DNA of 64,000 nucleotides from Phallusia mammillata (lineage: Eukaryota): NCBI GenBank assembly GCA_965637545.1, contig OZ281496.1, positions 3,782,001-3,846,000 of the forward strand, read 5' to 3'. The position numbers and the translations under genes were made by a program. Under the pieces are notes generated by a model, which made no database searches, was not told where the DNA came from, and saw nothing but the letters and a program-made list of their open reading frames with translations. Numbering within the stretch: position 1 is the stretch's first letter; each line of letters starts with the position of its first letter. This document shows, piece by piece, positions 6,901 through 41,860 of the stretch.

Positions 6901-9900
6901 ATGTCAAGTCGACTATTAAAAGCGGCTCTTTTTGTGAGCGCTCTGAGTATGCTCCTCCGAGGTTAGTGACTTTATTGATTTTTGTTGTGATTTCAACTTA
7001 AGTGGTATGCATGATAAGTCAAATTCTGGCAGTACGACAACATTAAGCTTTGCTGTGCGTTTTTCTGGAGGACCACGAGTACAAGCTCAGTAGAAACGAC
7101 CAAAACAGTGGTCGGCAACCGCCGGTACGCGACGAGTTCGTTATCAGGCTGTATAATCTTTAAGGTTTTAAATGGTCTAAAACATTTTGTCCATGTATCC
7201 CGGGGAATACAAACTAATTTAGGTTTTTTCATTGCCAAATATTTGTAGTTTTTTTTAAGACCGGTCCGCGATAAAACTTTAGTTTCAAAAACGGTCTGCA
7301 GTAGAGAAAAGGTTGCCGACACCTGCTCCAAAAGACATTAATGTTGTGTTGCAAATATCACGGATGTTATATAAAGGGAGCTATGGGTCCCGAGGGTTAC
7401 TTAAAGGGGTAATCGATCTATAAAAGGCTGGGAATCACTGTTCTAGTATTGAGAAATCAGAGAGAGTAACACGAGGACAAAAATTCAGGCCCCACATTGA
7501 TTAGATATAGTTTAGTATTTAAAAAAATATTTTCTACTTTAGTATTAATGCGACATCTTTAGGCGAGCATTCTTCTTGGCTAATACGTATATATCAAGGG
7601 AAATATTGGTTGTGGCCAGGAGAAGTCCTGCAAAGCATCGTTTTCAACTTGATATAGATTTTCGTTTTTTTTTAGTATCCTATAATGCCGCTTTTCGTAT
7701 TTTTTGCAGCTGAAACTGCTTCCTAGCATAATAAACAGAGTGGCAATATCCATCGTTGCGCCTTTTTTAATTTTTATGTATTTTAGTTGCACACCAACCA
7801 AGTAACATCCCACAAACCCTTTATGTCATACAACAATACCTGGTCATACGGCACAAGGGGAGACTGTCCGTTATATTGTCGAACATTGAAAGATATATTT
7901 TCGTAAATTGAAAACTTTGGAATATGTAGGCTTAAACAAGTAAATTGGGCGAAAATACGCCATGGTGGCGAACAGGCTTGTATGAGAGCTAAAGCTTGTT
8001 AAACAGCATGTTATACTGTTTTACTTAAAATGGTGCTTGTATCATTTAGTTTCCGACACACTGTGTGCAGTGGAGAATGTAAGCGGTGCTCATTATTATA
8101 CAACAATTGCCCCTAACTGTAACACATGGGCCCGACGATTTGTTTCAACTGGAGATTCTTCTCGGTTAATTGCACATTTCCGTTTGGGACAGCTTGCTGC
8201 AAACAACTTTTGCAAGGTAAAACTTTACGAACTTAGTCCTTGAAATGAGCCTAATTCGAAATTCGTCCGTTCGTTTCCGCGTAGGTTCGAATTTCATTTC
8301 TTTCAGTTAGATTTTAAATACTTTCCTAACCTTATGCGCAAATCGTGAACAAAAAACATCTAGATTTACGAGGGATCCGACGACCAAGGTAAATTAGCTG
8401 GAACGTTGGAAGGTGGAGGCTTATCTTTTCCAGTTATCGTTGAAAGTTCGTCTGCTTATATATCTTGTGTCACAGACCTCACATCGGAATCTGTGTCGTT
8501 TTGTCTACAACCATGTAAGTCAGGCTTACGATTCATTTAAAACCGAAACTTAAAGCATATATTGTAGATGAAACATGTTTTCGGGTCGATATCAGCAACA
8601 AATAAAATGATGTCAAATCTATTATTTTGCAGACATTGAAAAAAATAATAATTTGCAAACATAGTTTTAATGTAAAAAAATCGCAGTTGATGAGCACTTT
8701 TTAAACAGTGGTGATATTCCATTGCTTATCGGATCGACAACTACACATAAGTCACAGAAAATCGACAACACGATGGTCAAAACAATTGCTTGGAACTATT
8801 TTACCAGCTGTGTTGTCTCAAGCTAAACTTTTTGTGTTTTATAGTTACTTCGTGCGGGGAAGATGTTGCTGATATACCGTACAATTTACTATCTCCGATG
8901 TTTCCTGGTAACTACCCCAACCTTGCTGGTTGTATTTGGAGACTTCAAATGAATTGCAGCACAACCTTATTGTTCCAATTTTCCTCATTTGACACTGAAA
9001 CCAACTACGACATTCTATACGTAAGTGTCTTAACTTATAATATAACCTAAAAATCCAGGAGATATTGACAACGCATATAATCGAGTGGAAACGGTTTGTT
9101 ATCTGTGGGACATTTCCTGCCGCACGCACTGAAAGTAATACATGATTAAGTTTTTTTTTAAATGTATTTTAGAGTAACATATTTATTATAAACTGATTTT
9201 GCAGTGCGAAAAAGTTCACTTCTAATATTGAGGAAAGCAATAAATTTGTTTAAAGTGAAATCCTATTTTTGTTAAGCGCCTAACTAAATGATGAAAAACT
9301 TGCGGCTTTAAGAAGGTATGCGGCCTTTTATGACAAAAAGTGCGCCCCCCCTGCGGCATAATGTTAACATTCCTGAACATACGAAAAGTAACTAAATGGA
9401 GTATTGTTTTCAGTTCAAGAACGAAGAGGGTATTGTGGACAGATTTTCTGGGACGCTTCGATCATCTGATTACACGATGACAGCAACAAATCTTACTGTT
9501 GTGTTTTTGACCGACGGTAGCGGGCAATACAGAGGATTTAATGCGACAGTAGGTGAGGCAAATCTTCTTTCAGGCACACAATTTTGACATGCAAATAATA
9601 ATAATACACTTGATCTCAGCTAGCATGGGTTGTGGTACGATGTAAAAAAACTTCAATATTTATTTTAAAAACTAAGATCTAGTCAATAAGATAACACCGA
9701 ATAATTGCGACAAGTGCTATAGATTTCCTTTTGGTTTAGCTAATTACATTCTAGAGAGTTCCCCACGGGCTCTTTTGACATCAAGTTCTTATTTTTGGTT
9801 CTGTCTCACCAAATTACATCATTTTGTTAGTTCGCTGATGCCAAGCTGTACCATTTTATATGATAAAAATGCGGGGTAAATAAAATCCATTAAATTATTA

Positions 9901-12900
9901 TCACAATATAAAAGCCATGAAATGTTTGAAATAACAAATTTAATAAAAGCAATGAAATAACAAATTTAATGCGTGGAAGTAAATTTTAATCCATAAAAAG
10001 TGGACTAGTGCTCGAACTTTATTATCACGGTTTAAGAATGCTTTTTGTGTAGAAATACAACCAACTGTTGAATGTAGGACTGCAAATTTGATCATAAGGT
10101 AGGTTAATACTTTCTTTTTGATTCTTTTGTGAAATTTATTGATAATTGTTGAAAGTAATAATCAGAAGATTGTTGAAAAAATTTGAAGTATTTCAAGCAT
10201 TTTGTTGTGCTGCCTGTTTTTGTCATAAGCCTGCAATTGCTTGTTTTTCATTGATTGAGACATCTTTTACTTATCAGCAATGGGTCTTCTAATGGGATGC
10301 CGCTAGAAAAACTGCAACATAGTATAAATGTTTGGAAAATAAAAAAAATGACAGGTTGTCTAGACTTTTATAATGCCCAAAAACACGACAGTCCAATTTT
10401 CGCAGAGTAACAGCTGATCAACAGAACACATTAGATTACGAACTCGGTGACACACTTTACATCGCATTGGACAGGGAAACTCCCCTTTCTCAACTCAATA
10501 ACAGCTGCAAGGTCACGGGGTCAAACCCAGTGTTTACGTTTGACATTGGCCAATGCAAAGGTGTTTTTAAGGTAAAATTGGATTTTGTTCTGAACTCATA
10601 GACTATATGTCCTTATTATTTTTTTAGACAACATTATTCGTTAGAAGTAATAAACATTGCATGGCTAGGGGTAATAATAAAGTGCAATAAGCTTTTTATT
10701 GCTGCATAATAAAAATGAAATACCAATTTTGAAATATAATGTAATTTTCGTGCTCTTATACAGAATGAAAACGGTATGGTGTCGGTGTCTTTCCTGATCT
10801 GGAGGTTTCTAGCTCCATCCCCTGCAGTGATCCAGCGTGACGTTCAAAACAAGCTCAATGTGACTTGTTTATTTGACGCGGACCTTCTTATCGCGTCATC
10901 CAAAATTAGTACACAAATCGGGTAAAGCGACGAAAAACAAACCATTATATAACAGCTATGGAGTGGCATTCGGCACAAGACATCATGTACAAGACACACA
11001 GTAGGCGTCATAAAACGTAACACGTAGTCTTTTGTTGACATCACTTTGAAACAAATTGACACTGGGAAAACAGAAATGTTCCATATGATACAAAACATCC
11101 AACCACACCACGAATGGCATACAGCAGTTAACACATTACACACGACACAGAACACATCAATCTACCCATGGCACAAACCACATGACACGCACGACACATT
11201 TGACATGAAATACAGTAAAAGTATACCACATCTGCCACATGTAACAAGACATGCACCCAACAGCACCTGCCGCACTATGTCTGACACGCATCACAGTTTG
11301 TCTTTCCCTTTCAATTTTTATTAATCGCAAACATTTTATTTATTGTAGATCTGCCGAAATTATTGCAAAGAAAAAAGGAAGTTTGGATGTCGACCTAAAT
11401 CTCTTCAGCAACGAATATTTTACCGAAAGCTTGCCCGGAGAAGTAACTGTGCCCAACTACATTTTTGCTAAATTTAAACTAGATGGGATTTCTGTAGGCG
11501 ATGATTACTTTATTGTCCAGGTGAATTGAAAACAAAATGCTTTTAGTGCAAGAAAACACTGCATTTACTAGTTTAGTTTTTAATAGTTCTGGCATCGTTG
11601 CACTGGTTTGTAAATTGAACTGTTAAAGTGGAATACCTTTCTTACAGCTGGAAACCTGTTGGGCGACACGCAGTGGAAACTCCAATAGTTTGCCGAATTA
11701 TCAAATTGTACAAAGCGGGTAAGATATACTTGAATTACCTCAACATTTTTTTCTCGTTTGGGAGCTTATTTCTTCAATGATTAATTTTCCACACCTGTAT
11801 TTCACTCTGTTTAACTTGGAATCGAAATATTTAGATGCGTAGTGCCACCCAGTGGAGGCGAGGCTGCCAACGCTAAGACGTTGATACGAAATTACGAATC
11901 CAACTTTGCAACTTTCAAGTTGATGAGCTTTGTGTGGACAAACTTTACCGACGCAGAACAATTTATCTATATCCACTGCGACGTGACCGTCTGTCATAAT
12001 TCAACTGGACAATGCCCTGAACAGGTGAGTTGAGTTAAGTATGTTGCTTCCAAACTGGTGTGTCCTAGGTTCGCTTGCCAATACGGTATATTTTCTGACA
12101 CCAGCTGCACTCATGAGATTTTACTTGTTTAATCAGTACAAAGGCCGAGTAGTCTGGCGCGTCTGACCCAAAAAGACCTAAAAAAAACTTGATCTGGATT
12201 AGTCCCCCATCCCGCCGTCTCGGGTCCGAACCACATGATAAAAACGATGTTTACTGTCCATAGCTTACATGCAAACTAAAGAGTATTTGAACCCTCTTGT
12301 TTGGTTCAGCTGATAGAGTAATAGCACGGATAATACGCGGTGCCGTGTAGGAATGCTTGGGAGACCGGCCTTTAATCGGCCTGACGCACTGTGTTTATAT
12401 ATATGTGTGTAATTCGGTATGACGCCTTCAATAAAACTGGTGTACAATGAAATATCAATATGAGTGTAATTGTTTTGCAGACTTGTTCTGGTAAGAAACG
12501 GCGATCTGTTGAAGACAATGGTCGCCATCAACTGCTTTCTGCAGGGCCAGTGCATATCGTTCAAGGTACCGGTTATATGCACTTGCTTGGTAACGCAATT
12601 TAAACATCATTTAATCTATATTCTAGATAATATTGCTGATACACGAGCTTTTGCTAAGCAAATTTGTAGTTCTAGCAAGCAGGTCACACCTCTTGGGGCA
12701 TAATAACTTAAGTTTTCGAAATATTTTCCCCATTTATTGTACTGTGGCTTGGTGACTACTTACATAGATGTATATGTGATTAACTTGACTGGTAACATTA
12801 ACAACCGCACCTTTGTTAACTGCCTTGACTTACTTCAAAAAAAGGCTATGTTTGCATCAAAAGACACATATAAATAGGTAAATAAAATTAGACAATTACC

Positions 12901-13272
12901 TTAAAACATATTTCATGGGTTCGAATCCCATCTCTAATTTTATTTTCTTGTATCCGTTGCTGTAACAACGAGACTGGTTCGATGGCTTCTTGCAATCTTG
13001 ACATATACTGCGATTTTTATTATAGCGAACACATGACCGTTTCATGGTTGGCTACATCAATAAATAAACAATTCTTCACACATTTTGTTTTTGTTAAGCA
13101 TGACTTTTTTATCGCTTATACAACAGGAGAAAGAAACGAAGCTATAGAAGGAGTTGGCAACAGCTACCAACTTGTGATGTTTGTTCTTCTGGCTGTAATT
13201 ATTATAGGAGCTGGTTACATCGTATGGGGCAAACTGACCCAGGGTCGCAATGCGAGACAAAATCGCCAGTAA
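6901..13272 (+). CDS. CUB-CUB-ZP-TM protein (CUZD1-like architecture), gene 1, 575 aa, intact
   Basis: 13 GT-AG exons with continuous frame: 6901-6961, 8050-8216, 8364-8514, 8845-9020, 9414-9552, 10053-10098, 10406-10571, 10764-10921, 11349-11520, 11648-11718, 11835-12024, 12481-12565, 13127-13272. Signal peptide MSSRLLKAALFVSALSMLLRG. CUB motifs CGE..SPMFPGNYP...CIW and FLTDGS...GFNA. ZP-C motifs LETCWAT and YIHCDVTVC. Furin site KKRR/S, EHP LSAGPVHIV, TM LVMFVLLAVIIIGAGYIVW. Confidence 0.9.
7106..7325 (-). mobile_element. hAT (Charlie-like) MITE in intron 1
   Basis: TIRs CAGTGGTCGGCAACC / GGTTGCCGACACCTG with a degenerate TSD (gaccaaaa/ctccaaaa). The reverse complement matches 45432-45665; the orthologous copy is at 33758-34415. 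Confidence 0.75.
12143..12244 (+). mobile_element. Short tRNA-derived SINE (older copy) in intron 11
   Basis: GGCCGAGTAGTCTGGCGCGTCTGAC...GGGTCCGAACC...AAAA. Same family as 39231-39349 and 39928-40017. Confidence 0.55.
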
Positions 13273-13754
13273 ATGAACTTTTTATTATTCTCATCATAGC
13301 ATTGTTTGTGTGCATGTAAATAACTATTTACTTTTGAAGATAAAAACAAATAACAAATTAAAGCTGTTTTTCATTTAAAAAAACGCTGTTTAAAATTTTG
13401 TAAATAAATATTATGCATCATTTCACTTAATACATGCATCATTCATAGCTAAAGTGCTGACATGAAATTAGTTGTCAAAGTATTGTTGTGTATCTGTTTA
13501 ATTGTTATGTACAATATAATCACATAGGGTCAAAACTGTGTCTTTTGGCTTAGCTTATGCAATGAATCAGGAAATAACATTTTCAATTATTTTAGCGCGG
13601 TAGCCTCTGTTGAGCGTGGTTATATTCACCTTTGAATCTCATTTATGGTATTTAATTTAACACAAATTAAACCCATAACAAAATGATTTTTGTCTGGGGG
13701 TCACTAACCCTATGCCCGCTAGACTAATTCTTAAAAGAGCCGGTTGGGCACCGT

Positions 13755-15280
13755 TGGTAAAACCAGTCAAGTTGAGAACTAAAGCTAACCACCCGTGTTA
13801 GGAAAAGAGGGTGGGGTTTAACAGGAAAAGAAACCACCCAAAGAAACCCTGTTGGATAGTTTCAGGCGCCGAAAGAAAGGATGCAGCACAAAACACAGTG
13901 ACGATATTAAACAATATGTAGTTTTACTACATTACTAAAAAATGGCACAAAAAATGCAAGCAGAAGTTTCAAAAGAGATTGGGCCCTGTTTTTGTTTGAA
14001 TGAAAATCATGACATGCTAATTTGAACAAAGCCACTTTGACAATAGCACAAAACAATTTATATAAACGCATTGCTTCAACACGTTTATACTTATGTTCTG
14101 AACTGGTAGCCTTTGAACCATTTGGTTATCTTAAGGTAGCACTCGGGTTTTAAAAAATGTAAATAACACGATAGTTTTGAAAGCCTAATTTCCGTACGAA
14201 TTTGAGCAATAGATAGTGTTTGTTACAAACAAGGTGTTGCATGCTTATATTTAAAGATTTCATATTATAATCTTGGCTAGTTATATTTCGATGTATATGG
14301 TCGATTCCAATTTCTTCTTTGTAATCCATTTCACACACGCAAAAATCAATATCTGCCGGTCTGGAAAATGCAGTAGGCCTGCGTTCTGAAGATTTCTGTG
14401 TTTCTTCTTCCAAGGCTTCTGTCGCCAAGTTGGTCCCCATTGTATTGATAAATGCATGGCTTGGCTCTTGATACACATTAAACATTATTCATATTTTGTT
14501 GTGATGTGTGGTTGTGTAATGCAGTAAAAACAACTATCTGATTTTTCTGTGTTTTATAGCTCTTGTTAATTCAGTACAACAGGTTTGAAGTACCTTATGT
14601 AGACCTGAAACCGCTTGTTTATTTGTTGGTCTGAACAATGTGTGGACATTTCTGATTAGCAGTAAGGAAAACCTAGACAACCAGTTGCAACCGGTACGAA
14701 ACCAGCCAAATTACAACTATAATTTGCTTTAAATTTGATTATTTAAAGAAGAATATATTTTTTGACATTGCAGATTTACATGTTAGTACAAGTAGCTTTC
14801 CACCTACAATTTTTAACGTTGTATTGAAGGTGTTATCTAATGTCGCGTATAAACCAATTTAATCGTGATATTTATTCATCAACGCGGGAAACACCTTTTG
14901 TATATGGCACAGTATACTAAAAGGTCATGCATGTCTGTAGGCAATATGCTACGTTGCTTTTGAACTCACTCTTTGGTGAGCACCCTCACTCAACAATTCT
15001 GATACAAAAATTGCAACACAAACCGAAGTGTGTTGGAAATTATGCGGTATATTTATAACGTTTTCGGGTAGAATGCCAGTTTACAATACGATAAAAACGA
15101 TCTCAATTTTTTTTTTCGATCGAGTTATATCACGTTCTCGTACATTGTTTTGACTGATTTCACAAAACAGAAACATTTTAAGTCCTGACATTGCAGGCAT
15201 TTATTACACAAATCGTATACAGCATAAGAGTTTCTGTATAACAACCACATGTTCTTGTTTATGTTGAAAGGGACAGTGTA
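13755..15280. other. ~1.5 kb segment present only in the left duplication copy
   Basis: Flanks align to 41340 and ~41545, with a much shorter, different sequence between them in the right copy. Contains an inverted fragment of the micro-exon family terminal exon (14668-14722). Confidence 0.5.
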
Positions 15281-16926
15281 AGTAACACATTTTGAGTGTG
15301 ACACATTGCAAGATGAAGTACTAAGCCACACTAGAGCAAAGAGTACCGGAAGTCAATCGGGAAAACTTTTCTCAAAAATTCAAAGTAATAAAAATTCTGT
15401 TATTCACGATTTAATGGAGATTTATTAATTGATTGGTTAGTTTTATGCCACAGCAAATACAAGACTAGTATTTTCGATCTTTTTAAATTTGTTTCCAAAA
15501 ACATTACAGAAAGCAAAATGTCGCACGTGCCGCAAAATTTTAAAACTGATCGGTATTTGGGAAACTAGGTAATGATGTAGAATCACGTTTTGTACAATTT
15601 AAAGTCTATGTGCCCAGGGTTTTTTTAAGATTTGGTTTGGGTGACCGCTAAGTAGTTTTAAGAGACCGCAAGTGTTTCATTTAAATACCAAAAACTGTAG
15701 TTGTAGTTGCAAGTCCAAATTTTGGGAAACCGCTGGAGAAAACACCTTGAAAAAACACTGCATGTGCCCTGAAATTAACGATAACGGGTGGAGCCCCGAT
15801 ATATTCCCTAATGCAGCTGGTTGTGGCGAATTCCTCCCCTGTTCTCATCCCTTTGCATTCGCTCTTGTGCTGGGGCTCCATTGGGGTCGAAATGGTCAAA
15901 GGCGATTCGTGCTAAAATATGAGGAAAAATTGCTTAAATGAAGAGTTTTTATATTAAACATGGTGTTTATTACCCTTGTTTTGTGGTGGTCGGTTATGTC
16001 GGTCGGATTTTACCTTGGGTAAAACCTAAAACGGAAAATGTCATCAAAGTTTTTATATTAAACGTATCCAATGTTTTTCTGAGATATTGTTGCAAAGCTA
16101 TGACCACTAAAAAATCTCAATCAAAATCATTGAGTTTGCAAAACAAATATTTTTATTTGTTAAATACTGATAATAATTCAATACTTCATGAGAAAATGTA
16201 ATTCTATTTCAAAAATGTTAAAGCGTTTTGTGGGGAGTAGAATTAAATTCCCAGCAAAAATAAACTGAAACATCATTTATTTTCCTACTTGATCTACGGT
16301 AGCTTAACTTTATGTGGAATGCAAATATGCTGGATAAATCAACTAACTATTGTAATGAGTTTGATATGACTGGTCAAAATAATTCAATCAGTTGTTAAAC
16401 ATAATAACTGATAAGAATGTATAGAAAATCTGGTCTGAATACAAGGTCAGCAAACACGAAAAACCTTAACCAGAACTGAACTGATTTGTGTTTTGCAAGA
16501 GCTATCATAAAGGGTATGTTGACACCTTCACAAAGTTTTTAACTAGACATTTTGAGTAAGTTGGTTACTAGTCTACGTTGTCACTAGTGTTCGTGTAAAT
16601 TTAGAGCTACAGCATTTGCCTGTTTATGCAAATAAATAGTTTATGTAATTAATTTGTGACTTAATGAAGTCATACGTTTGTTTGTTTTGGCAGTGATATA
16701 CATGCACGACAAAATGCACCACACTAATCACTAACTTTTAAACTTATTTACTTACATTAGTTTCCAAATCCTAATCCCCGAAGCAGTTCCCGTCCCACCC
16801 AAATTCACTGTCAACATCAAAATCATCTGGAAAATAAGAGTCGAGGTTCTTTGATTTTGAAGGAACCACTTTATCTTTTTTCTGACAAAAACACAAAAAA
16901 AGAATGTTTAGATCTTTTTTAAATTT

Positions 16927-17013
16927 TTTTTCGAACACTATCTGTTTGAAAATTTAACGGTTAACAAATTCATTTTCGAACACTATCTGTTTAAAAATTT
17001 AACGGTTAACAAA
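16927..17013. repeat. ~45-bp tandem duplication
   Basis: TTTTCGAACACTATCTGTTT(G/A)AAAATTTAACGGTTAACAAA occurs twice. Confidence 0.8.
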
Positions 17014-17249
17014 ATAGACGTAAAAAGCGACATGCTTTATTTTTCAACCGTTTCGGCTAATGCTCATTTCACCATCAGTGACGTGAAGGGCCACATCAGT
17101 TACACCCGTTTATACCCACTTAAGTCACGTAAAAGAATGACAAAAAGGTGAAACAAGTGTCGCTTAAGAATAGTAGATAAACAAGATTTGGGCACTTATT
17201 TTTGTCGTTAGATCATTTTAGTTTTATAATTTGAATGCATTCTAGTCAA

Positions 17250-17303
17250 TTCGAGAAATTCGAGAAATTCGAGAAATTCGAGAAATTCGAGAAATTCGAG
17301 AAA
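17250..17303. repeat. 9-bp minisatellite (TTCGAGAAA)x6
   Basis: Read directly from the sequence. Only two units are present at the paralogous site ~43396. Confidence 0.9.
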
Positions 17304-22918: not shown

Positions 22919-23099
22919 TAATTAACAAGGGTGCCGACCTCAAGAAAGTTCAAATAGAAAATGTTAAATATTGATAGGCAAACATATGCTTACGTACTAG
23001 TTGATGTGCAAATACATATAGTTGTAAGTTATATCGGTAGTATTAAATTAGTATGTTTATTCATTTATTTGCATTGTATAGTAGTAGATATTAGTTGGT

Positions 23100-29100: not shown

Positions 29101-29639
29101 ATTGAACGCAAGTCGGCTGCACTTACCACTCGGCCATTTTGGCAAACTCATGCATGGCCCTTAACGTAGCTTTTTTCCGTTTTTTTGAAGTTTTGTATCA
29201 AAAACATACTCCACACCGTCATAACCAGCAAACTTAAATTAAAAGTTACTTCAAAAAAGAAACACTTAATTCCGAATAATGGTAAGCGGTGAGTTCGAAT
29301 CCCACCATCAACTGATTCTTTATAATCTGAAGTGTATTGAGAATCAACTCGATTCGGCGTTAAATCTTTTGCAAACTTGGCCCACTTCGAAGTATACATA
29401 AGAGTGGTATTAATTTTAGTCTGTATGAAGTTTTTAATCTCTAGTTCAGGGGCAAATGCTTTCGCACGCATATATGTTTATCTAAGTTAAACTATCTTTT
29501 TATCGCAGACACTCCAGGAGACAGAGTTGAAGTAAATGAAGCAGAGTATAACATCTTTCAACTGCTGATGTTTGTTCTTCTGGTTGCTGTAATTATCGGA
29601 GCTAGTTACATTTTGTGGGGCAAAATTGCCCAGATGTGA
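23140..29639 (+). CDS. CUB-CUB-ZP-TM protein, gene 2 (divergent paralog), 584 aa, intact
   Basis: 13 exons, continuous frame: 23140-23200, 23730-23896, 24469-24619, 24881-25056, 25693-25846, 26236-26284, 26801-26966, 27183-27340, 27545-27716, 27942-28012, 28116-28305, 28547-28655, 29509-29639. Same intron phases as gene 1. KKRR/S furin site, LSAGPVHIL, TM LLMFVLLVAVIIGASYILW, very short tail GKIAQM*. Confidence 0.88.
28862..29143 (-). mobile_element. tRNA-derived SINE with CORE-like central domain, in gene-2 intron 12
   Basis: Reverse complement has box A TGGCCGAGTGG, a box B-like GGTTCTAATAC, TGTGTTTCCCTGGGCAAAAAACTTT..AATTGCTCTAACCCA (resembles the CCTTGGGCAAG core motif, recalled from memory) and an (AAAC)n tail. 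Confidence 0.7.
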
Positions 29640-31599
29640 ATTCCAAACAAATTGGTCTGTAAAATAACATTTCAGATTGAGTTTTCACAAATAACATTGT
29701 ATTAATTCTCATGACATAAACAAATTTCCCCAAAACAACAAATTAGGCAGCGATTTATTCTCAAATTCGTTGATAAATTTGCTAGAGGTTTCAAAACTAG
29801 TCATTACAGTACATGTAATATTTAATGCTTTATTGTTGTCAGAAAAATGCCTTGTCAAAGTGATTTTGTTTGTATGACTGTGAAACAATATAATCGGATG
29901 CAATTGATACTGTGTGTGTGTTGGTTATATGACCACCAAAGTTACATTTGCGCTTGGCACGTATGAATTAACCAGTCTAGAGTAACATGTGTCTCCTAAT
30001 TAAATTGTGATAGGAAGTATTACGAAGTTTGAAACATTGTTAGCAATAGACAGAAACTAGCTTGTTACACGATTTGACTTCCAAACCAGCTGTTTTTTTT
30101 TTAAATAATTGCTAAATTTGCACAATTCATGTTAACCACTAAATAAAACTGGAATGAAAGTTTAGAAATGGCAGTCACCGCCAGAATGACGTATTTTGAT
30201 CAAATAATTTACTGGTGAAGTCCTAACAGGTTTTTGGATAAGGAAATAATCTTGACAAGCTTATTTGTGGTGGATTTGGTTTGCAAGTTGGGATTGTTTC
30301 TTTTGATGTGTGAATTTGATTTCATGCACAACTTAATGCTTCCACCAAGTGTATCGATTGTATCCAACGTTCTATTTAGTTTCAGATTCAAACCAACCAA
30401 CCGTAAACATATATTATCTGTTGAATCAAATCTTCACAAACAAATAAACATTTTACATATTTATGTTTCGAAGAAAATCCAAATGAGTTTCGTTGCTTTC
30501 ATTAGACTTGAATTTTAACGGTTTGGATTTGTTTGGTCTGATCCATTTTAACATTTTTATTCATTAAATGTTTTGAGCAGTGGAAACACATGTGTTTATA
30601 TTTAACTTTGATTGTTTAATAATTTGGGTTTCACCCTATTTTTTGTAATGGCACTTTTGAAACGTACCGCTACTTTGCCATATTTATTAACTACTGTCAC
30701 GCACCAATAATTTTGACATCGACTAGTCGCGCCTGCACATTTGTAATTGGCCGGTAAGGTCATGTGACTTTTGGTCTGCCATGTTTTGTGTTATATTTAG
30801 GGCAGTTATTGCCTGGGCCTCATGGGGTTTGGAGCGTTTGCGTTGTAGTTACAAAACGTGGTCGTGTTGTGTTGTGTTGTAACTTATTAAAACTTTGGAG
30901 ATAGCCAATGTTCTTGCCATTTTATATTTATTATTTATATTAAAATTGTTTTAGTTGTTCGGTGTGAACATTACATCTTTGTCTTTAGCAGTAAGCCGTC
31001 AGTGCAGGAGAAATCTAGCAAGTTAGGGGCGGTGATCCTACTATAATAGTGGATAGGTTTGGGTCAGCATACTTTGTTTAGTGGAAGTTAACCACCTCGC
31101 CTTTTCCTAAATCCTAGGCCAAATCCGGTATCACCTAACTAATTTTGGTTGCAATTAAACCGATTTTTAATATTTTCACCTGAATCTAATGGTATCTCGG
31201 GGACGTTGTGAATGACCAAGATGTCTGCTTGTGCTGGAAAAGTCTCTGGCAGGTTCGACCGAACGTCAATTCACCAGTTTGATTGCTTCCTCTTGTTGTT
31301 GAGCTGTAATTGTGTCGTCATTGGCGTCGTGTCGCAAGTCGTCGCTTGATAAAGAAATGTCAGGCAATGTTAAGAAGCTGCAGCTTATCATTTAATAGCT
31401 CGATGCTTTTACATTGATACTGTGACACTGATCCGACTTCACTTTGGTTCCCAAGCAGTTGCTTGGCCATTGTTAGCCAGTTTCCTCTGTGGTGTATGCC
31501 CAGTTGTGGCATCGCACAGACTAGGTGAGGCATGGGTTTTTGCCTTGTTACTCCCAGCAAACTGGAGTGCCGTTGGATGGCTAGTATCAACGCAACATG

Positions 31600-32226
31600 T
31601 TTGTGCGAGCTTCTTTCTTAGCAAATACGTTTATATCAACGAAAATACTGGTTGTGGTTAGGAGAAGTGGTGCTAAGCACAGTTTTCAACTTGATATAGA
31701 TTTTCGTTTTTTTATGAACCATGAAGAACAAAACTAATGTTCAGATACTATCTTGGAATGGCAATATGTTGTATTGTTTTTGCAACTCAAACTGTTTCCT
31801 GGCATAATAAACAAAGTGGTAATATACATATTTGTTTTTGTGTGGTTCAGTTGTACACCCACCAAGTAGCATCCCGCAAACTCTTTACGTCGCGCAGCAA
31901 TAGCTTGTTCTACGGCAAATAAAATGCGTTATATTTTCGAACATCAAAAGATGTATTTTCGTAAGTTGGTATATGTTGGTTTAAACCACCAAATTGGGCG
32001 AAAGATGCCATTGTGGCAACTCTGGTACAGGATGTATGGGAGCATAAGCTTGTTATACTGTTTTACTTTTAAATGGGGCTTGTATTATTTGGTTTCAGAA
32101 ACATTGTATGCAGTGCATAATGTAAACGGTCGTTCATATTATTTAACAATTTCCCCCGACTTTAAGTCCTGGGTCCGACGATTTGTTTCAACTGGAGTTT
32201 CCTCTCGGTTAATTGACTATTTCCGT
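31600..32226 (+). pseudogene. Remnant of CUB-ZP intron 1 (3' part) plus truncated exon 2
   Basis: VSETLYAVHNVNGRSYYLTISPDFKSWVRRFVSTGVSSRLIDYFR aligns to gene-1 exon 2. The acceptor is changed AG>GG (tatttgg), two Cys are lost, there is no exon 1, and it is truncated at ~32226. Confidence 0.75.
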
Positions 32227-33757
32227 TGCGACGGAAAACGAAAACGTTTGTTGTAGTTGTTTTAAAACTTTTTTCCTGGTGTCAGATATAACGCGCAATT
32301 TTGATAACTGTCAACGGCTATTCTCATTCATTACGTTTCCTGTTTCCGAATTAAGCTTTAACAACTTAATTATTACGACATAGCATTTATTTCAATAATG
32401 ATTTCCAGCATCATGAATTCAACAAGTGAAACTTTTATTTGTAATTAACAACAAACGGCTATTTTTTGATTAAGTAACAACAAACAAACTAATACTGACG
32501 TGCGACATACAACAATAAGTTCCGTATGAGATTGGATCAAAGAATAATAAACTTTTGGCCAGTGGAAACACGTTAATGGAAGATTAAATTGAAATGGAAA
32601 ATCATTTCATGAACTAACAAACATTTCCCTCATACTTTTTGTTTATATTTAACAACGTTTCACTACATAATATTTAATTTGTTTCTACTTTGTCTACACG
32701 CACACTTTGTCTAGATTTAACTTTTCCCAAAACGTACCACTACTTTTGTTTACTTAATTAACTACTCTCTCGCACCAGTGATTTTGACGTCGTCGCGCCT
32801 GCACGTTTGTGATTGGCCGGAAAGATCATGTTACTTTTGACCTGGCGTATTGTGTGCTATATTTAGGGCAGTTCTTGCCTGGACCTTGTGGTGTTTAGAG
32901 CGTTCGCATTTTAGCTGCAAAGCATGACGGTGTTGTGTTGTAACATATTGAAACTTTGGAGATAGCCAACGTCATTTCAATTTCATTTTTATTATTTATA
33001 TTAAACTTGTATTAGTTGTTCGGTGTGAACATTACACCTTTGTCTTTAGCAGTAAGCTGTCAGTGCAGGAGAAATCTAGTAAGTTAAAGGCGGTGATCCG
33101 CTATAATAGTGGATAGGGTTGTGTAAGCTTACTTTGTTCAGTCAAAGTTAACCACCTCGCCTTTCCTTAAATTCCTAGGTCAAATCCGGGTTCACCTAAC
33201 TAATTTCGGTTACAATTATGCCGATTTTTTATATTTTTACCTGAATCAAATGGTATTTCGGTGGCGTTGTAAATGACAAAAATGTTTGCTTGTGCTGGGA
33301 AAGTCTCTGGCAGGTTGACCGAACGTCAATTTACCAGTTTGATTGCTTCCTCTTGTATTTGAGCTGTAACTGTGTCGTCATTGGCGTCGCTTTGCAAATA
33401 GGCGCTTGGTAAATAAATGTCAGGCAATATTGAGAAGTTTCATCTTTCCAACCGGAGTGCCGCTATACCCTTATGTGACACGTTTGTTGCAGGGGGTGCA
33501 GACTTCATGTGGTTAGTGATATTGCTGTTAAAAATATATCTCCAAAGTAAAAATGTCAAGTCGACTATTAAAAGCGGCTCTTTTTGTGAGCGCTCTGAGT
33601 ATGCTCCACCGAGGTTAGTGCATTCATTGATTTTTGTTGTGATTTCAACTTAAGTGGTATGCATGATAAGTCAAATTCTGGCAGTACGATAAAATTAAGC
33701 TTTGCTGTGCGGTTTTCTGGAGGACCACGAGTAAAAGCTCAGTAGAAACGACCAAAA

Positions 33758-34415
33758 CAGTGGTCGGCAACCGCCGGTACGCGGTCGGGTACGAGTTTCT
33801 GACGGGTTCGTTATCAGGCTGTATAATCTTTCAGATTAAATGGTCTAAAACATTTTGCCCATGTATCCCGGGGATTATAAACTAATTTAGGTTTTTTCAT
33901 TGCCAAATATTTGCAGTTTTTTTTAAGACCGGAAAGCTTTAGTTTCAAAAACGGTCCGCAACAGAGTTGCAAGCGGGCCCGAAATCTGAGCCCGAAACCG
34001 GCCCGAACCCGAAAGTATGAGCCCGAAGCCCGGCCCGAACCCGAAACGTTTTTGCGAAGCCCGTTTAGGCCCGAAATTTTGATTGACAGGATGAGAAAGA
34101 AAAAAGAGATAGACAACAAATACAATGATCAATAGTAGACCATGGGGTAAACAATACGTTTTAGAGTAGAGTGGGCATTAGGTCAAAGCCAGAGTTTCTT
34201 AGCCGAGTGATTTTATTTTGTTTTTTTAAATGGCGGACACGGAACGTAAAGTCAGGCCCGTTTTAAGCCCGTTTTCTCACAAATACCTAAGCCCGAACCC
34301 GGCCCGAACCCGGCCCGAACCCGGCCCGAACCCGGCCCGAACCCGAACCCGGCCCGAAAAGCCCGGCCCGACTTGCAACTCTGGTCCGCAATAGAAAAAA
34401 GGTTGCCGACACCTA
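33758..34415 (-). mobile_element. hAT (Charlie-like) MITE, ortholog of 7106-7325, interrupted by a nested element
   Basis: Same TIRs and flanks as 7106-7325, split at 33961/34384. Confidence 0.8.
33962..34383. mobile_element. Young GC-rich hAT MITE (422 bp) nested in another MITE
   Basis: TIR CAGAGTTGCAAG / CTTGCAACTCTG. Perfect 8-bp TSD GTCCGCAA (33954-33961, 34384-34391). Subterminal GGCCCGAACCC arrays. Absent from the left copy. Confidence 0.9.
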
Positions 34416-34684
34416 CTCCAAAAGACAGTAATGTTGTGTTGCAAATATCACGGGTGTTATATAAAGGGAGCTACGGGTCCAGAGGGTTACTTAAAGGGGT
34501 AATCGATCTATAAAAGGCTGGGAATCACTGTTCTGGTATTGAGAAATCAGAGAGAGTAACACGAGGACAAAAATTCAGGCCCCACATTGATTAGATATAG
34601 TTTAGTATTTAAAAAAATATTTTCTTCTTTAGTATTAATGCGACATCTTTAGGCGAGCTTCTTTCTTGGCTAATACGTTTATAT

Positions 34685-35204
34685 CAGTGGTTCCCAACCT
34701 TTTTGTAGTCACGGACCCCTTATATAATTTTTTTCGCTCCACGGACCCCCAACGTAATTTAGTTTTTTTTGCGTTTTCTGCATTATACGTTATTATACTT
34801 TCGTTTTTCGGGGGCAGAATTTTAATCAACCTTCACAGTCCTTTAACCTCAATAAAGTTCTGTACTGTAGCAGCCAATGCAACGAAGAGATGAATTTTCT
34901 AGTGTACAATACTTAAAACAAAGCACAAAGAATGCTATTGTTATTTGTTGTGGTGTGTGTTGTGATGTCACAATGGAGGTAACAATCACCATAACAGTTC
35001 ATAACAATAACAATCATAACAGTTTTCCTAATCCAAGGGTTTGATAAACAGTTTGCACTTATTTACAGGATTGTAAAAACGGTTTGGGAACCTAAAAATA
35101 TTGTACTGTTGTTAATGCTACTGCAAATATTTGCCTTCACGGACCCCCTGAAACCATCTCACGGACCCCTTAGGGGTCCGCGAACCCCAGGTTGGGAACC
35201 ACTG
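34685..35204. mobile_element. hAT MITE (520 bp) in gene-3 intron 1
   Basis: Perfect 16-bp TIR CAGTGGTTCCCAACCT, perfect TSD GTTTATAT, internal CACGGACCCC repeats. Empty site at ~7587 in gene 1. Confidence 0.92.
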
Positions 35205-38200
35205 GTTTATATCAAGGGAAATATTGGTTGTGGCCAGGAGAAGTCCTGCAAAGCATCGTTTTCAACTTGATATAGATTTTTTTTAGTATCCTATAATGCC
35301 GCTTTTCGTATTTTTAGTATCCTATAATGCCGCAGCTGAAACTGCTTCCTAGCATAATAAACAGAGTGGCAATATCCATCGTTGCGCCTCTTTTAATTTT
35401 TATGTATTTTAGTTGTACACCAACCAAGTAACATCCCACAAACCCTTTATGTCATATAACAATACCTTGTCATACGGCACAAGGGGAGACTGTCCGTTAT
35501 ATTGTCGAACATTCAAGATATATTTTCGTAAATTGAAAACTTTGGAATATGTAGGCTTAAACAACTAAATTGGGCGAAAATACGCCATGGTGGCGAACAG
35601 GCTTGTATGAGAGCTAAAGCTTGTTAAACAGCTTGTTATACTGTTTTACTTAAAATGGTGCTTGTATCATTTAGTTTCCGACACACTGTGTGCAGTGGAG
35701 AATGTAAGCGGTGCTTATTATTATACAACAATTGCCCCTAACTGTAACACATGGGCCCGACGATTTGTTTCAACTGGAGATTCTTCTCGGTTAATTGCAC
35801 ATTTCCGTTTGGGACAGCTTGCTGCAAACAACTTTTGCAAGGTAAAACTTTACGAACTTTGTCCTTGAAATGAGCTCAATTCGAAATTCGTCCGTTCGTT
35901 TCCGCGTAGGTTCGAATTTCATTTCTTTCAGTTAAATTTTAAATACTTTCCTCACCTTATGCGCAAATCGTGAACAAAAAACATCTAGATTTACGAGGGA
36001 TCCGACGACCAAGGTAAATTAGCTGGAACGTTGGAAGGTGGAGGCTTATCTTTTCCGGTTATCGTTGAAAGTTCGTCTGCTTATATATCTTGTGTCACAG
36101 ACCTTACGACGGAATCTGTGTCGTTTCGTCTACAACCATGTAAGTAAGGCTTACGATTCATTTAAAACCGAAACTTGAAGCATATATTGTAGATAAAACA
36201 TGTTTTCGGGTCGATATCAGCAACAAATAAAATGATGTCAAATCTATTATTTTGCAGACTTTGAAAAAAATAATAATTTGCAAACACAGTTTTAATGTAA
36301 AAAAATCGTAGTTTATGAGCACTTTTTAAACAGTGGTGATATTCCATTGCTTATCGGATCGACAACTACACATAAGTCACAGAAAATCGACAACACGATG
36401 GTCAAAACAATTGCTTGGAACTATTTTACCAGCTGCGTTGTCTCAAGCTAAACGTTTTGTGCTGTTTAGTTACGTCGTGCGGGGAAGATGTTGAAGATAT
36501 ACCGTACAATTTACTCTCTCCAATGTTTCCTAGTAACTACCCCAACTTTGCTGGTTGTGTTTGGAGATTTCAAATGAATAGCAGCACAACCTTAGTGTTC
36601 CAATTCTCTACATTTAACACTGAGGGCGAATCCGACATTCTTTACGTAAGTGTCTTAACGTATAATATAACCTAATTTAAGGGTTCCAACAGAGGAAATC
36701 CAGAGATTGCGTGCAAAATGAGGGTAGTGTGGACAAAATATTTTTTTCTCTCTCATTATTTAACATGGTAATATTGTCGACGCAAATAATCGAGTGGAAA
36801 CGGTTTGGTATCTTTAGGAGATTTCTTGCAATACGCACTGAATTAATATGTGGCCCTCTGCGGCTAAATGTTAGCATTTCTGATCAAACCAAATATAAAT
36901 AAATACCGTATTGTTTTCAGTTCAAGAACGAAGAAGGTAATGTGGACAAATTTTCTGGGTCGCTTGGGTCATTTAACTACACGGTGACTTCATCAAATCT
37001 CACTGTCATGTTTGAGAGCGACGATAGCGTGCTAAGAGTCGGATTTAATGCCAAAGTAGGTGAGGCAAATCTCCTTTCAGGCACAAAATGTCGACATGCA
37101 AATGATAAAAATACACTTAAGCTCAGCCAGGATGGGTTGTAGGTTCACGATGGTCTGTAAAAAAAACTTCTTTGTGATTTAAACTAAAATCTAACTAATA
37201 AGATAGCAACGAAAATTTTTTGACTCCTTTTACTGCATTGCGACAAGTGCTTTAAATTCCTTTTAGATCAGCTAATTAGAATCTAGAGAGTTCCCAACAA
37301 GCTATTTTGACATCAAGTTCTTTTTTTTTGGTCCTGTCTCACCAAATTACATCGTTTAGTTCGATGCCAAGTTGTAACATTTTATATGATAAAATACGGG
37401 GTAGGTAAAATCCATTAAATTAATATCACAATATAAAGGCAATGAAAGGTCTAAAATAACAAATTTAATATTCAAAAGTAAATTTTAATCCACAAAAGGT
37501 TGAAAAATGCTTTATTTATACTTTATTTAATTTTTTTTATACCGTAGAAATACAACCATCTGTTGAATGTAGGACTGAAAATTTGATCATCAGGTAGGTT
37601 AATATTTTCTTTTTGATTCGTAAGTGAAAATTATTGATGCTTTTTGAAAGTCTTTTATAATCAAAAGGTTATTGAAAAAAATTCTTTATTGATTGAGACA
37701 TCTTTTACTTCTCAGTTTTCAATGGGTCTTCTAATGGGATGCGGCGATAAAAACAGCAATATAGTATAAATGTTTGAAAAGTAAGCAAAAAAAGAACAGG
37801 TTGTCTAGACTTTTATAGTGTACAAAAACTTAGCAGTGTAATCTTCGCAGAGTAACAGCTGATCAACAGAACACATTAGATTACGAACTCGGTGACACGC
37901 TTTTCATCGCATTGGACAGGGAAACTCCCCTTTCTCGACTCAATAACAACTGCAAAGTCACGGGGTCAAACCCAGTGTTTACCTTTGACATTGGCCAATG
38001 CAAAGGTGCTTTTAAGGTACAGTTGGATTTTTTTTCCAAACACATAGAAAGTTTGTCCTTATTATTTTTAGAAAACATTAGCTATTAGAACCAATTAACA
38101 ATACATAGTTAGGTATAATGATAAGTGTTATAATCTTTTTCTTGCTGCATAATAAAAAACTGCCAATTTTGAAATATAATGTAATTTTCCTGCTAATATA

Positions 38201-38419
38201 CAGAATGAAAACGGTACGGTGTCGGTGTCTTTCCTGATCTGGAGATTCCTAGCTCCATCCACTGCCGTGATCCAACGCGACGTTCAAAACAAGCTGAATG
38301 TGACTTGTTTATTTGACGCGGACCTTCTTATCTCGTCATCCAAAATTCGTACAAAAATCGGGTAAAGAGGCGAAGAACAAACATTTATATAACAGCTAAG
38401 ATGAACATATTTAAAGTAG

Positions 38420-38590
38420 GATCAGCCCTGAAGCGTCGATGAAGACCAGCGATCATGGCGTACATATCGATAAATCATAGAACGCCAGGCTTATTAAAGG
38501 CGTGTACCGAGTGAGCTGGTCCCCCGAGCATTGGGAATGTCAGATGGAAATGCTTGGGAGACCAGCTGATTCGGCACACGCATTCTATTT
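38420..38590 (-). mobile_element. SINE body fragment in gene-3 intron 8
   Basis: Reverse complement matches 56200-56265 (GCCTGGCGT...GACGCTTCAGG(G/A)CTGATCCTA). Not seen in gene-1 intron 8. Confidence 0.5.
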
Positions 38591-39230
38591 AGACAAGCTC
38601 ATATTATTGTGGAGAGTGTATTTACCAATGCTGCTCAACAAAATGCACGGTTTTAATCTAGTGCGTTAATTTGTATTTGATAATCTCGCGTACACACCAG
38701 GGAGTTAAAAATAGTAAGCTATTTGTCATATTGATTGCCATTTTTATTTCCGAACATTTTTAAATATTGTAGATCTGAAGAAATTTCGGCGAAGAATGCA
38801 GGAACTTTGGATGTTGCCCTAAATCTCTTTAGCAACGAATATTTTACCGAAAGCTTGCCCAGCGAAGTCACTGTACCTAACTACATTTTTGCTAAACTTA
38901 AACTTAATGAGATTTCCGTAAGCAACGATGACTTTATTGTTCAGGTGACTTGAAAACAAACAGCTTTTAGTGCAAGAAACCATTGTATTCTTTAATTTAA
39001 TATTCACTATTCTGGCATCGTTGGTCTAATTTGTAATTTATACTCTTAAAGTGGAATATATTTTTGCACAGCTAGAAGCCTGTTGGGCGACACGCAATGA
39101 AAACTCCGATAGTGTGCCGAGTTACCAAATTGTACAAAGCGGGTAAGATATACTTGCATTACCTCAACACATTTTTTTCTCATTTGGGAGCTTATTTGTT
39201 TAGTGATTAATTTTCCACCTGTATTTCACT

Positions 39231-39349
39231 ATGTTTTTTTTCACGGGGTTCGAACCCAGGACACTCCCGGGGAAAAATCCCGATCAAGGTTTTTTTTGAG
39301 TCTGTATGTGGGTCAGGCGCGCCAGACCATTCGGCCAAGTTCCTGCCCA
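39231..39349 (-). mobile_element. Young ~119-bp tRNA-derived SINE with TSD
   Basis: Reverse complement has box A TGGCCGAATGG, box B GGTTCGAACCC and an A9 tail. 9-bp TSD TATTTCACT (39222-39230, 39350-39358). Empty site at ~11798. Confidence 0.82.
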
Positions 39350-39927
39350 TATTTCACTGTGCTTAACTTTGCATCGAAACTTTTAAATGCGTTGCGCCAC
39401 TCAGTGGAAGCGAGTCCGCCGAGGCGAAGATTTTGATCCGAAACTACGAATCCAACTTTGCAAACTTTCAAGCTGATGAGCTTTGTGTGGTCAAACTTTA
39501 CTGACGCAGAACAATTTATCTACATCCACTGCGACGTGACCGTCTGTTATAATTCAACTGGACAGGTGAGTTGAGTTGACCGTATTTAGGACTTGTGATA
39601 GAGATTACAGTTTACCAAGAAATGTTAGTCAAAAAATATAAGAAGGTGTAGGAATATCGGTTTTAGTGATATCAGTTTTTTCTAAACCAACAAAACCACT
39701 GTATATTGCTAAACCACAGTGAACTTATAACGATATATCTTTATAGATAAACTAAAGAATTTCATAGGCGTTTATGGCCAGTTGTGACATTAAAAAGATT
39801 TAGTGAGGCGCGGTTTTATAGTCTGTTGCACCCAACTAACTGGAGTGTCCTAGGTTCGCTTGTCATTACGGTATATTTTCTGTCAACAGTTGCACTCATA
39901 AGATTTTATATGGCAAACCAGTGCAAA

Positions 39928-40017
39928 GGCCGAATGGTATGGCGAGCCTCACCCATATAAAGACATAAAATAATTTGATCGGGATTCGTTCCCTCGGGTT
40001 CGAACCACATGAAAAAT
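39928..40017 (+). mobile_element. tRNA-derived SINE, ortholog of 12143-12244
   Basis: GGCCGAATGGTATGGCG...GGGTTCGAACCACATGAAAAA. Confidence 0.55.
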
Positions 40018-41860
40018 AACGATGTTTATTGTCCGTAGCTTATATACAAACTAAAGAGTATTTAAACCCTCTTGTATGGTTCAGCTGATAGGGTAATAGC
40101 ACGGAAAATACGCCGTGCCGTGGAGGAATGCTTGGGAGACCGGCCCTTAATCGGCCTGGCGCACTATGGATTATATATATGTGTGCCGTGATCGCCTTAA
40201 TTCGGTATGACGCCTTTAATAAGACTGGTGTACGATGAAATATCAATATTAGTATAATTGTTTTGTAGTCTTGTTCTGGTAAGAAACGACGATCTGTTGA
40301 AGACAATGGTCGCAATCAACTACTTTCTGCAGGGCCAGTGCACATTGTAGTTTTCGAAATATCTTCCCCTTGTATAGTACTATGTCTTGCTGACTACTTA
40401 CGTATATGTTCATGCGATGAACTTGACTGGTAACAATCCCACCTTTTATTTAATTTTCATGGAAGGGCACATATGAAAGGTAAATAAAACAATAATTATC
40501 GTAAAACATATTTCATGGGTTCGAATCCCATCACTAATTTTCTTTTTCTTGTATCCGTTGCTTTAACAACCAGACCGATTCGCTGGCCTCTTGCAATCTT
40601 GACATATACTGCGACTTTCATGGGTATAACCAACACATGTCCGCTTCAGTGCTGACTACATCGATATATAAGCAGTTATTTACCTATTTTTATCGTTTTT
40701 TTGTTAAGCATGACCTTTTTTTTATCTGTTATACAACAGAAGAAAGAAACGAAGCTATAGAAGGTGCTGGCAACAGCTACCAACTTGTGATGTTTGTTCT
40801 TCTGGCTGTAATTATTATCGGAGCTGGTTACATCGTATGGGGCAAACTGAACCAGGATCGCAATGCGAGACAAAATCGACTGTAGATAAATGTTTTAGTA
40901 TTCTCATCATGGCTTGTTAATCTGCATTTAAAAGCTATTGCCTTTGAAGATCAAAAAACAAATAACAAATTAAAGCTGTTTTTCATAGGGCTGTTTGTTA
41001 GTTTAGTTATCAAATAAATATTATGCATCAATTCACTTATTACATGCTTCATTCATAGCTGACATGAAATTACTTTGTCAAAGTATTGTCGTGTTTCCGT
41101 TTAACTGTTGTATACAATATAATCAGATGGGCCTTTGAATCCTTTGAATTAGCTGATATCATGAGTCAGAAAAAAACATTTTTAAATATTTTAGCGTGGT
41201 AGCCTGTGTTGACCGAGGATATATTGGCCTTTAAATCTCATTTATGGTAATTAATTCAACACAAACAAAACCCATACCACCGTCCTCAAAAAGGCTTATT
41301 GTCTAGAAGTCACCAACACTATGCCCGTTAGACTAATTCTTAAAAGAGCCGGTTGTGCCTCCAGTTTACACAATAGGCTACGCCTCATGACGATTCTTTT
41401 TAAAGTGGTGCAATAGGTTTATCTAACCATGGACAATTAATACTTAACAAAGCATTATGTAACAATCATGGAATTCGACTGTTACGTCATACGCGCTATA
41501 ATAAATGGCAGTTGGTGAACAAAGTGGTACCTGGAATGCTAAACTGATGTAACACATTTTGATTGTGACACATTGCAAGATGAAATAATAAGCCACACTA
41601 GAGAAAAGAGTACCGGAAGTCAATCGGGAAAAACTTCTCAAAAATTCAAACTAATAAACATTCCGTTATTCCCGATTTATGGAGATTTATTAATTGATTG
41701 GTTAGTTTCATGCCTCAGGAAATACAATTTGTTCCCAAAATATTACAGAAAGCAAAATGTCGCATGTGCTGCAAAATTCCAAAACTGATCGGTATTTGCG
41801 AAATTAGGTAATGATGTAGAATAACGTTTTGTACAAATTTACAGTCTATGAGCCTTGGAA

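Follow-up and report, generated by a model that had tools for sequence, protein, structure and literature searches.

Vertebrate CUZD1 is composed of a signal peptide, two CUB-type domains, a ZP module, and a transmembrane (TM) anchor, and the combination of CUB domains with a ZP module and a cleavage site also occurs in vertebrate DMBT1 (SRCR-CUB-ZP) and in the nemertean NeZPL2, which carries eight CUB domains. Uromodulin (UMOD) and GP2 (PDB entries 6tql, 4wrn, and 8xc5) combine EGF and D8C heads with a ZP module whose six-cysteine ZP-C half is followed by a cleavage site, then a blocking hydrophobic patch, and a glycosylphosphatidylinositol membrane anchor. The ascidian vitelline-coat ZP proteins that have been reviewed (HrVC70/120, HrVLP-1/2, and CiVC57) have a ZP module and a TM anchor, with heads made of EGF repeats (plus vWF in CiVC57) rather than CUB domains. 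This analysis concerns a stretch of 64,000 nucleotides (nt) from the ascidian Phallusia mammillata (contig OZ281496.1 of assembly GCA_965637545.1, positions 3,782,001 to 3,846,000 of the forward strand; hereafter the window, in whose coordinates all positions are given), which contains a tandem array of ascidian CUB-ZP genes: two intact genes (g1 and g2), one chimeric pseudogene (g3), and two exon relics. The encoded proteins follow the part order of CUZD1 if their first head domain is taken as a diverged CUB, and differ from CUZD1 in that this domain is not recognisable as a CUB by sequence. They differ from DMBT1 and NeZPL2 in how many CUB domains are present and in what context, and from uromodulin and GP2 in their CUB-type heads and TM helix, their filaments being predicted from sequence. 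A literature search for CUZD1 with tunicate or ascidian found no paper linking them. The array probably encodes CUB-ZP membrane precursors that are cleaved and assembled into filaments in the manner of uromodulin and GP2, with relaxed constraint and gene conversion shaping the heads.

The three gene-length paralogues all lie on the + strand, from the ATG of g1 at 6901 to the stop codon of g3 at 40885 (Table 1). Gene models were built by hand from paralogue alignments and open frames, and g1, g2, and g3 have a common layout of 13 exons (E1 to E13) with identical intron phases (1,0,1,0,1,2,0,2,0,2,0,1), in agreement with a first-pass annotation that had described a tandem array with shared intron phases at 6901-40885. 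In g1 and g2, which are 65% identical in amino acid sequence overall, every intron is bounded by GT-AG and the open reading frame is complete. The same annotation had counted three full-length paralogues and two fragments; there are three gene-length copies, of which g3 is broken in E11-E12, and both fragments exist, one as an orphan E13-like exon and the other as an E2-like relic. Searching the window by tblastn with the g1 and g2 proteins recovered g3 as the one further gene-length copy together with these two isolated pieces, and gave no match on the minus strand. No ZP exons are present in the window upstream of the orphan exon, and the E2-like relic has lost both of its cysteines and has no donor site. 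An initial 12-exon model missed the first ZP-N cysteine (Cys1) and required an acceptor that is not conserved, and it was replaced once the micro-exon E6 emerged.

Table 1. Coordinates of the genes, exons, domains, and relics of the CUB-ZP array within the window (aa, amino acids).
Feature	Position	Strand	Description and basis
g1	6901-13272	+	Intact, 13 exons, 575 aa; E8-E13 junctions colinear with the cDNA-derived Phallusia protein P0001
g1 exons E1-E13	6901-6961, 8050-8216, 8364-8514, 8845-9020, 9414-9552, 10053-10098, 10406-10571, 10764-10921, 11349-11520, 11648-11718, 11835-12024, 12481-12565, 13127-13272	+	
g2	23140-29639	+	Intact, 13 exons, 581 aa
g2 exons E1-E13	23140-23200, 23730-23896, 24469-24619, 24881-25056, 25693-25846, 26236-26284, 26801-26966, 27183-27340, 27545-27716, 27942-28012, 28116-28305, 28547-28655, 29518-29639	+	
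g3	33553-40885	+	Chimeric pseudogene
g3 open exons E1-E10	33553-33613, 35675-35841, 35989-36139, 36470-36645, 36921-37059, 37548-37593, 37851-38016, 38204-38361, 38773-38944, 39072-39142	+	
g3 damaged and terminal exons	E11 39387-39565, E12 ~40269-40353, E13 40740-40885	+	
E13-like orphan (TM) exon with 3' flank	4615-4783 (tblastn piece 4633-4767)	+	Self-blastn, tblastn
E2-like relic	32092-32226	+	Remnant of an older E2, 64% identical in aa to that of g1; self-blastn, tblastn
g1 E1, signal peptide	6901-6961	+	20 codons + 1 nt, then phase-1 intron; ATG and hydrophobic stretch; kept in g2 (23140-23200) and g3 (33553-33613)
g1 E2-E3, N-terminal CUB-like domain, ~106 aa	8050-8514	+	E2 variable, E3 highly conserved
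g1 E4-E5, bona fide CUB (CUB2)	8845-9552	+	Pfam PF00431
g1 E6-E8, ZP-N half	10053-10921	+	Cysteine alignment
Micro-exon E6 with ZP-N Cys1	g1 10053-10098 (46 nt), g2 26236-26284, g3 37548-37593	+	Phase-constrained search
g1 E9-E11, interdomain linker and ZP-C half	11349-12024	+	Pfam PF00100, profile match
g1 E12, polybasic KKRR (then Ser) and hydrophobic patch LLSAGPVHIV	12481-12565	+	Read from sequence
g1 E13, TM helix, short basic tail, stop codon	13127-13272	+	20-residue hydrophobic run, aa 543-562

From its N-terminus, each protein consists of a signal peptide, a CUB-like domain, a CUB domain, a ZP module, the KKRR site, a hydrophobic patch, and the TM anchor. Pfam, protein databases, the PDB, and structure-prediction tools were queried exon by exon, the joined g1 and g2 proteins being used only in local scripts. 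Profile searches with PF00431 and PF00100, suggested in the first-pass annotation as a check, place CUB on E4 and E5 and ZP-C on E11, and the label CUZD1-like given to the genes there holds for the architecture, that is, for the order of parts if the first domain counts as a diverged CUB. The second head domain (E4+E5) is a canonical CUB by its profile matches: PF00431 scores 34.4, 41.9, and 35.9 bits on E4 and 21.8, 13.4, and 20.6 bits on E5 (g1, g2, and g3, respectively), and the two exons cover profile positions 1-61 and 65-109. This domain resembles CUBs that bind ligands in cubilin, neuropilin, and MASP. The match of E4 to cubilin 3kq4 reaches E 1.7e-13, and in it the Glu of the FxxE motif falls opposite the Glu of the LE motifs in cubilin. 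Within E5 of g1 (9414-9551), the peptide GIVDRFSGTLRSSDYTMTATNL is similar to the framework-3 motif found in antibody light chains and draws hundreds of weak PDB matches, a likeness that was judged to be a chance short motif, with beta-strands resembling each other.

The ZP module is represented by a ZP-N half with four cysteines and a ZP-C half with six. No exon or relative scanned gave a match to the Pfam ZP-N family, and the assignment of this half rests on alignment and cysteines: all four (Cys1 in E6, Cys2 and Cys3 in E7, Cys4 in E8) line up with those of ascidian ZP proteins. On E11, the ZP-C family PF00100 scores 29.2 bits in g1 (cutoff 24.6) and 23.8 bits in g2 for the exon alone, compared with 77.7 bits for P0001, a Phallusia relative, and E10 read in the correct frame contains the motif CWAT...Y..V.SGC. 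When a profile made from the ZP exons and two Phallusia relatives was compared with solved structures, the best matches were uromodulin (6tql, E 6e-17; also 4wrn) and GP2 (8xc5, 1.4e-15), followed by betaglycan ZP-C (E 4e-6), ZP2, and ZP3, and the module is accordingly classed by profile similarity as UMOD/GP2-type. KKRR, then LSAGPVHI(V/L), and a 20-residue hydrophobic run are alike in g1 and g2, and these features are also kept in relatives, the putative cleavage site in P0001, in a second Phallusia protein (P0006), and in proteins of the ascidian Clavelina. A ZP module and a TM anchor had already been described in the first-pass annotation, and this description stands, with a polybasic site and a hydrophobic patch between the two and with uromodulin/GP2 as the best solved match. 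With eight N-glycosylation sequons per protein, g1 and g2 are predicted to be type-I membrane glycoprotein precursors.

By analogy with uromodulin and GP2, the precursor would reach the cell surface, where a protease would cut at KKRR and release the blocking patch together with the anchor; the ZP modules would then assemble into filaments by polymerisation, with both head domains projecting outwards and perhaps binding ligands. One alternative is that the proteins stay on the membrane as non-polymerising co-receptors similar to endoglin or betaglycan, with the CUBs binding a soluble ligand. The TM anchor with its short cytoplasmic tail, the appearance of betaglycan ZP-C among the PDB matches (E 4e-6), and the likeness of CUB2 to ligand-binding CUBs would all suit such a role, which is nevertheless improbable: a conserved polybasic site and hydrophobic patch directly follow ZP-C, ZP-N has all four cysteines, and the uromodulin/GP2 match is better than that of betaglycan by ~10 orders of magnitude.

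Relatives of the array are concentrated in ascidians. A search with E11 (63 aa) against 1.84 billion representative proteins returned only 22 at E<1e-3; the named relatives among them were all ascidian (Phallusia, Clavelina, and Ciona) with the exception of a single uncharacterised fish protein, which ranked last, and six short or unnamed matches had no recorded organism. The best match was the partial Phallusia mammillata protein CAB3262700.1 (P0001), which is colinear with the E8-E13 junctions and closest to g2 (75% identical over the ZP-C half). A second Phallusia protein, the 'alpha-tectorin-like' CAB3266892.1 (P0006), is colinear over nearly the full length at 197-208 bits, and full-length colinearity with Phallusia and Clavelina proteins reaches E 1e-61 to 1e-42. 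In a tree of ZP modules, g1, g2, and P0001 form a tight clade on a long branch (support 100/99), with P0001 nested inside it; the sister of this clade is P0006, on a separate long branch, followed by Clavelina proteins including one that NCBI names CUZD1 (XP_076808840.1, whose link to vertebrate CUZD1 is the source name only). Neither Phallusia protein is identical to a copy in the window, and vertebrate CUZD1 itself was not among the matches of any search.

The Clavelina lepadiformis CUB-ZP-EGF genes (XP_076808840.1, XP_076801610.1, and CAK8691415.1) have the same domain order, and differ in having one more domain, of EGF-like type (FXa_inhibition), ahead of the TM helix. Spliced mapping of XP_076808840.1 gave the same phases as g1 from E2/E3 to E11/E12, exons of 166 and 158 nt identical in size, and a micro-exon of 49 nt with the same phases as E6, together with an extra EGF-like exon and the lack of an intron after the signal peptide. 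Judging from this mapping, the CUB-CUB-ZP gene plan, including the micro-exon, is common to distant ascidian orders. Large tandem arrays, on the other hand, seem specific to the Phallusia lineage; neither of the two Clavelina loci checked, whose genes group with this family in the tree, has a ZP gene within 10 kb.

Contigs of DNA from the same organism point in the same direction. Their summed depth, a rough proxy for copy number, is ~1.3-2 thousand over the introns and the variable E5 and 9-25 thousand over E3, E7, E8, and E11 (~5-18x the intron level), and 13-36 distinct contigs cover single sites in the conserved exons. Variant letters in these contigs mostly reflect cross-mapping of paralogues and were not taken as a measure of allele diversity. 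This is a rough sign that a dozen or more further copies with ZP exons at least 90% identical are present in the genome. Sequence comparisons thus support an expansion of the family in this lineage, as the first-pass annotation had proposed, because the Phallusia clade is tight, the Clavelina genes lack ZP neighbours, and contig depth is raised. The array is an unremarkable case of a known protein type that has expanded within one lineage, a useful annotation rather than a surprise. It also gives a clean view of the growth of a family of multidomain surface proteins in a chordate genome that evolves fast, since segmental duplication in tandem, the replacement of a 5' end between copies, decay of a copy, and domain-specific constraint can all be followed in the one window.

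The rate of change differs among the domains. Between g1 and g2, amino acid identity is 58% in the first head domain, 53% in CUB2, and 73% in the ZP module, with dN/dS (the ratio of nonsynonymous to synonymous divergence) of 0.50, 0.48, and 0.28, respectively; across all domain comparisons this ratio ranges from 0.24 to 0.71. ZP modules are 72-85% identical among the copies in the window, the statistics for E11-E12 of g3 being approximate because the g3 E11 model took in 12 intronic bases. The proportion of nonsynonymous sites that differ (pN) is about twofold higher in the heads than in the ZP module (0.271 vs 0.144, Fisher p=1e-7), and the corresponding synonymous proportion (pS) is not different (0.447 vs 0.404). 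An earlier hand count of 25 identical residues out of 56 in exon 2 of g1 and g2 proved exact, and the accompanying contrast of conserved ZP with diverging CUB modules is borne out by these identities and pN values, with the exception of E3, a head exon in which both kinds of site are better conserved than anywhere else in the gene (pN 0.03-0.09, pS 0.18). The synonymous mosaic within the first head domain (pS 0.63 in E2 vs 0.20 in E3, p=0.0005) suggests gene conversion or synonymous constraint. Over its first 130 nt (8364-8493, 24469-24598, and 35989-36118), E3 is 92.6% identical in all three copies, and the g1 and g2 introns that flank E3 do not align, the identity beginning six bases upstream of the exon, just inside the acceptor; synonymous constraint (e.g., a splicing signal) or a short conversion tract may be responsible. 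Among 30-codon windows, none has pN clearly above pS and none has dN/dS >1, with pN close to pS at the end of the first head domain (end of E3) and in E5. As far as these comparisons go, the pattern of conserved ZP modules and diverging heads is real, is not uniform, and can be explained without positive selection; the contrast is consistent with purifying selection that acts more strongly on the polymerisation module, with heads that in part change almost neutrally, and with gene conversion in patches.

A matrix or coat protein family presenting variable CUB heads on a common filament had been proposed in the first-pass annotation. On this reading the genes would encode components of the egg (vitelline) coat, and diversifying selection would act on the CUB heads, displayed along a shared ZP filament, for the recognition of gametes or of self and non-self. 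The roughly twofold faster change of the heads, the near parity of pN and pS at the end of E3 and in E5, and the expansion of the family in tandem arrays fit this explanation, as do the facts that ascidian vitelline coats are built of ZP proteins, that polymorphic ZP proteins occur in Ciona and Halocynthia according to the same review, and that the nemertean NeZPL2 has transcripts in oocytes. An egg-coat role is nonetheless unlikely: the ascidian coat ZP proteins reviewed are of the EGF-ZP type, with CUB-ZP proteins not mentioned there, the ZP module is far nearer to uromodulin/GP2 than to ZP2/ZP3, no window has a dN/dS above 1, and the most conserved exon of all (E3) belongs to a head.

Secretion from a digestive, pharyngeal, or endostyle epithelium, where filaments of the uromodulin/GP2/CUZD1 kind would trap particles or microbes in the filter-feeding tract, is a tentative possibility that falls short of being probable. 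The vertebrate CUB-ZP proteins CUZD1 and DMBT1 belong to exocrine or mucosal epithelia, which counts in its favor along with uromodulin and GP2 as the best solved relatives, the eight sequons per protein, and, in Botryllus, the transcript of a ZP-related gene along the endostyle. The likeness to uromodulin and GP2 is, however, confined to the ZP module, and the closest ZP-C relatives are all ascidian proteins for which no site of expression is recorded. As the site of action, a secretory or mucosal epithelium is slightly preferred to the egg coat. If the genes were expressed in the egg coat or the feeding mucosa, the variable heads would be obvious candidates for a role in recognition. A further step, in which paralogues co-polymerise into mixed filaments whose combinatorial, individually variable CUB heads form a lineage-specific recognition surface for gametes (self/non-self) or microbes, is speculative and has little probability.

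The reading preferred here, of cleaved CUB-ZP precursors that form filaments, has to be set against a number of points that weigh against it, the foremost of which concern the first head domain. Two CUB domains had been assigned in the first-pass annotation; E4/E5 is a Pfam CUB in all copies, and E2+E3 has no sequence match to CUB. The E2 and E3 exons of g1, g2, and g3 gave no Pfam match at E<=1, comparison of E2+E3 with the PDB gave no CUB match by phmmer or with a family profile, aligning the first head domain with CUB2 by hhalign gave no significant result (probability 0.3%), and Pfam showed no CUB in the N-terminal domains of P0006. The two exons do have the 1-0-1 phase layout of CUB2 and are colinear with the N-terminus of relatives. 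An AlphaFold model, made for the homologous domain of P0006 from an alignment that excluded short exon rows (since MAFFT scattered them across the long relatives), is of middling confidence, with a predicted local distance difference test score of 52-74. Its best Foldseek matches are the CUBs of PCPE-1, neuropilin, and TSG-6 (E 4e-6 to 1e-5), and VIA-align places CUBs at Z 8-9 and PliG and other beta-sandwiches at Z 9-11. Based on exon layout, colinearity, and the P0006 fold model, the first head domain is best described as CUB-like, a diverged CUB that is not proven.

The remaining points on this side of the balance concern cleavage, selection, copy number, and expression. KKRR lacks the Arg at P4 of the strict furin consensus, and some ZP proteins (endoglin and betaglycan) do not polymerise. 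Changes in CUB2 on the g1 lineage are at an about neutral ratio (N:S = 14:4), and a set of three sequences is too small either to demonstrate positive selection at individual sites or to rule it out. The roughness of contig depth as a measure also limits how far the number of copies can be taken. None of the RNA runs searched contains g1, and there is no RNA support for g1, g2, and g3 themselves, which tells against the egg-coat and the mucosal explanations as well. A paralogue outside the window is expressed and spliced, because a small contig of the probable RNA run X4 aligns to E8 (10844-10903) and continues into ..VIPQIEADEI.., thereby crossing the E8/E9 junction of CAB3262700.1.

The history of the array can be read from comparisons of the window with itself. 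By self-blastn, a segmental duplication maps ~4615-18431 onto 29499-44495, with a more divergent copy lying between the two, and it is by such segmental duplication (~4.6-18.4 kb onto 29.5-44.5 kb) that the array grew. Identity is 83% between 4615-6463 and 29499-31386. It rises to 92-98%, introns included, between the 5' region of g3 from promoter to E4 (32729-36675) and 5900-8900 of g1 (self-blastn and a 200-nt sliding window) and drops to ~80-88% over the rest of g3, the break lying in or close to E4. Upstream of g3 are an older promoter-like copy (30660-31386) and the decayed E2. The promoter-to-E4 segment of g1 was therefore copied into g3 after the original duplication, and g3 is now decaying at its 3' end. 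Nucleotide alignment to g1 shows that the E11 acceptor has changed from AG to AA (39385-39386), that E11 carries one additional nucleotide near 39462 (a change of frame also shown by tblastn), and that 12 nt are missing after 39561, with the loss of one ZP-C cysteine codon. The 3' end of E12 has diverged, the homologous GT donor is gone (40346-40356), and the nearest GT is in the wrong phase for E13. The frame is not recovered by skipping E11, since the phase is 2 at the end of E10 and 0 at the start of E12.

Several minor features accompany the duplicated segments. Intron 1 of g3 contains two insertions (33967-34382 and 34687-35204) that are absent from g1, the first of which has Pro/Arg-rich open frames on both strands and looks like low-complexity or mobile DNA. 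A repeat of ~200 nt is found in intron 1 of both g1 (7128-7337, +) and g3 (33758-33960, +) and in inverted orientation at 45420-45665 (-), and is probably a dispersed mobile-element fragment. The duplication runs on for 3 kb downstream of g1 and g3 (15282-18431 vs 41549-44495, 75-84% identity), and this part includes a conserved open frame (15672-15938 and 41848-42012) without a Pfam match. The 10-kb spacer between g1 and g2 holds two local direct repeats of 74-77% identity (19284-19613/19809-20159 and 21603-21866/22650-22918).

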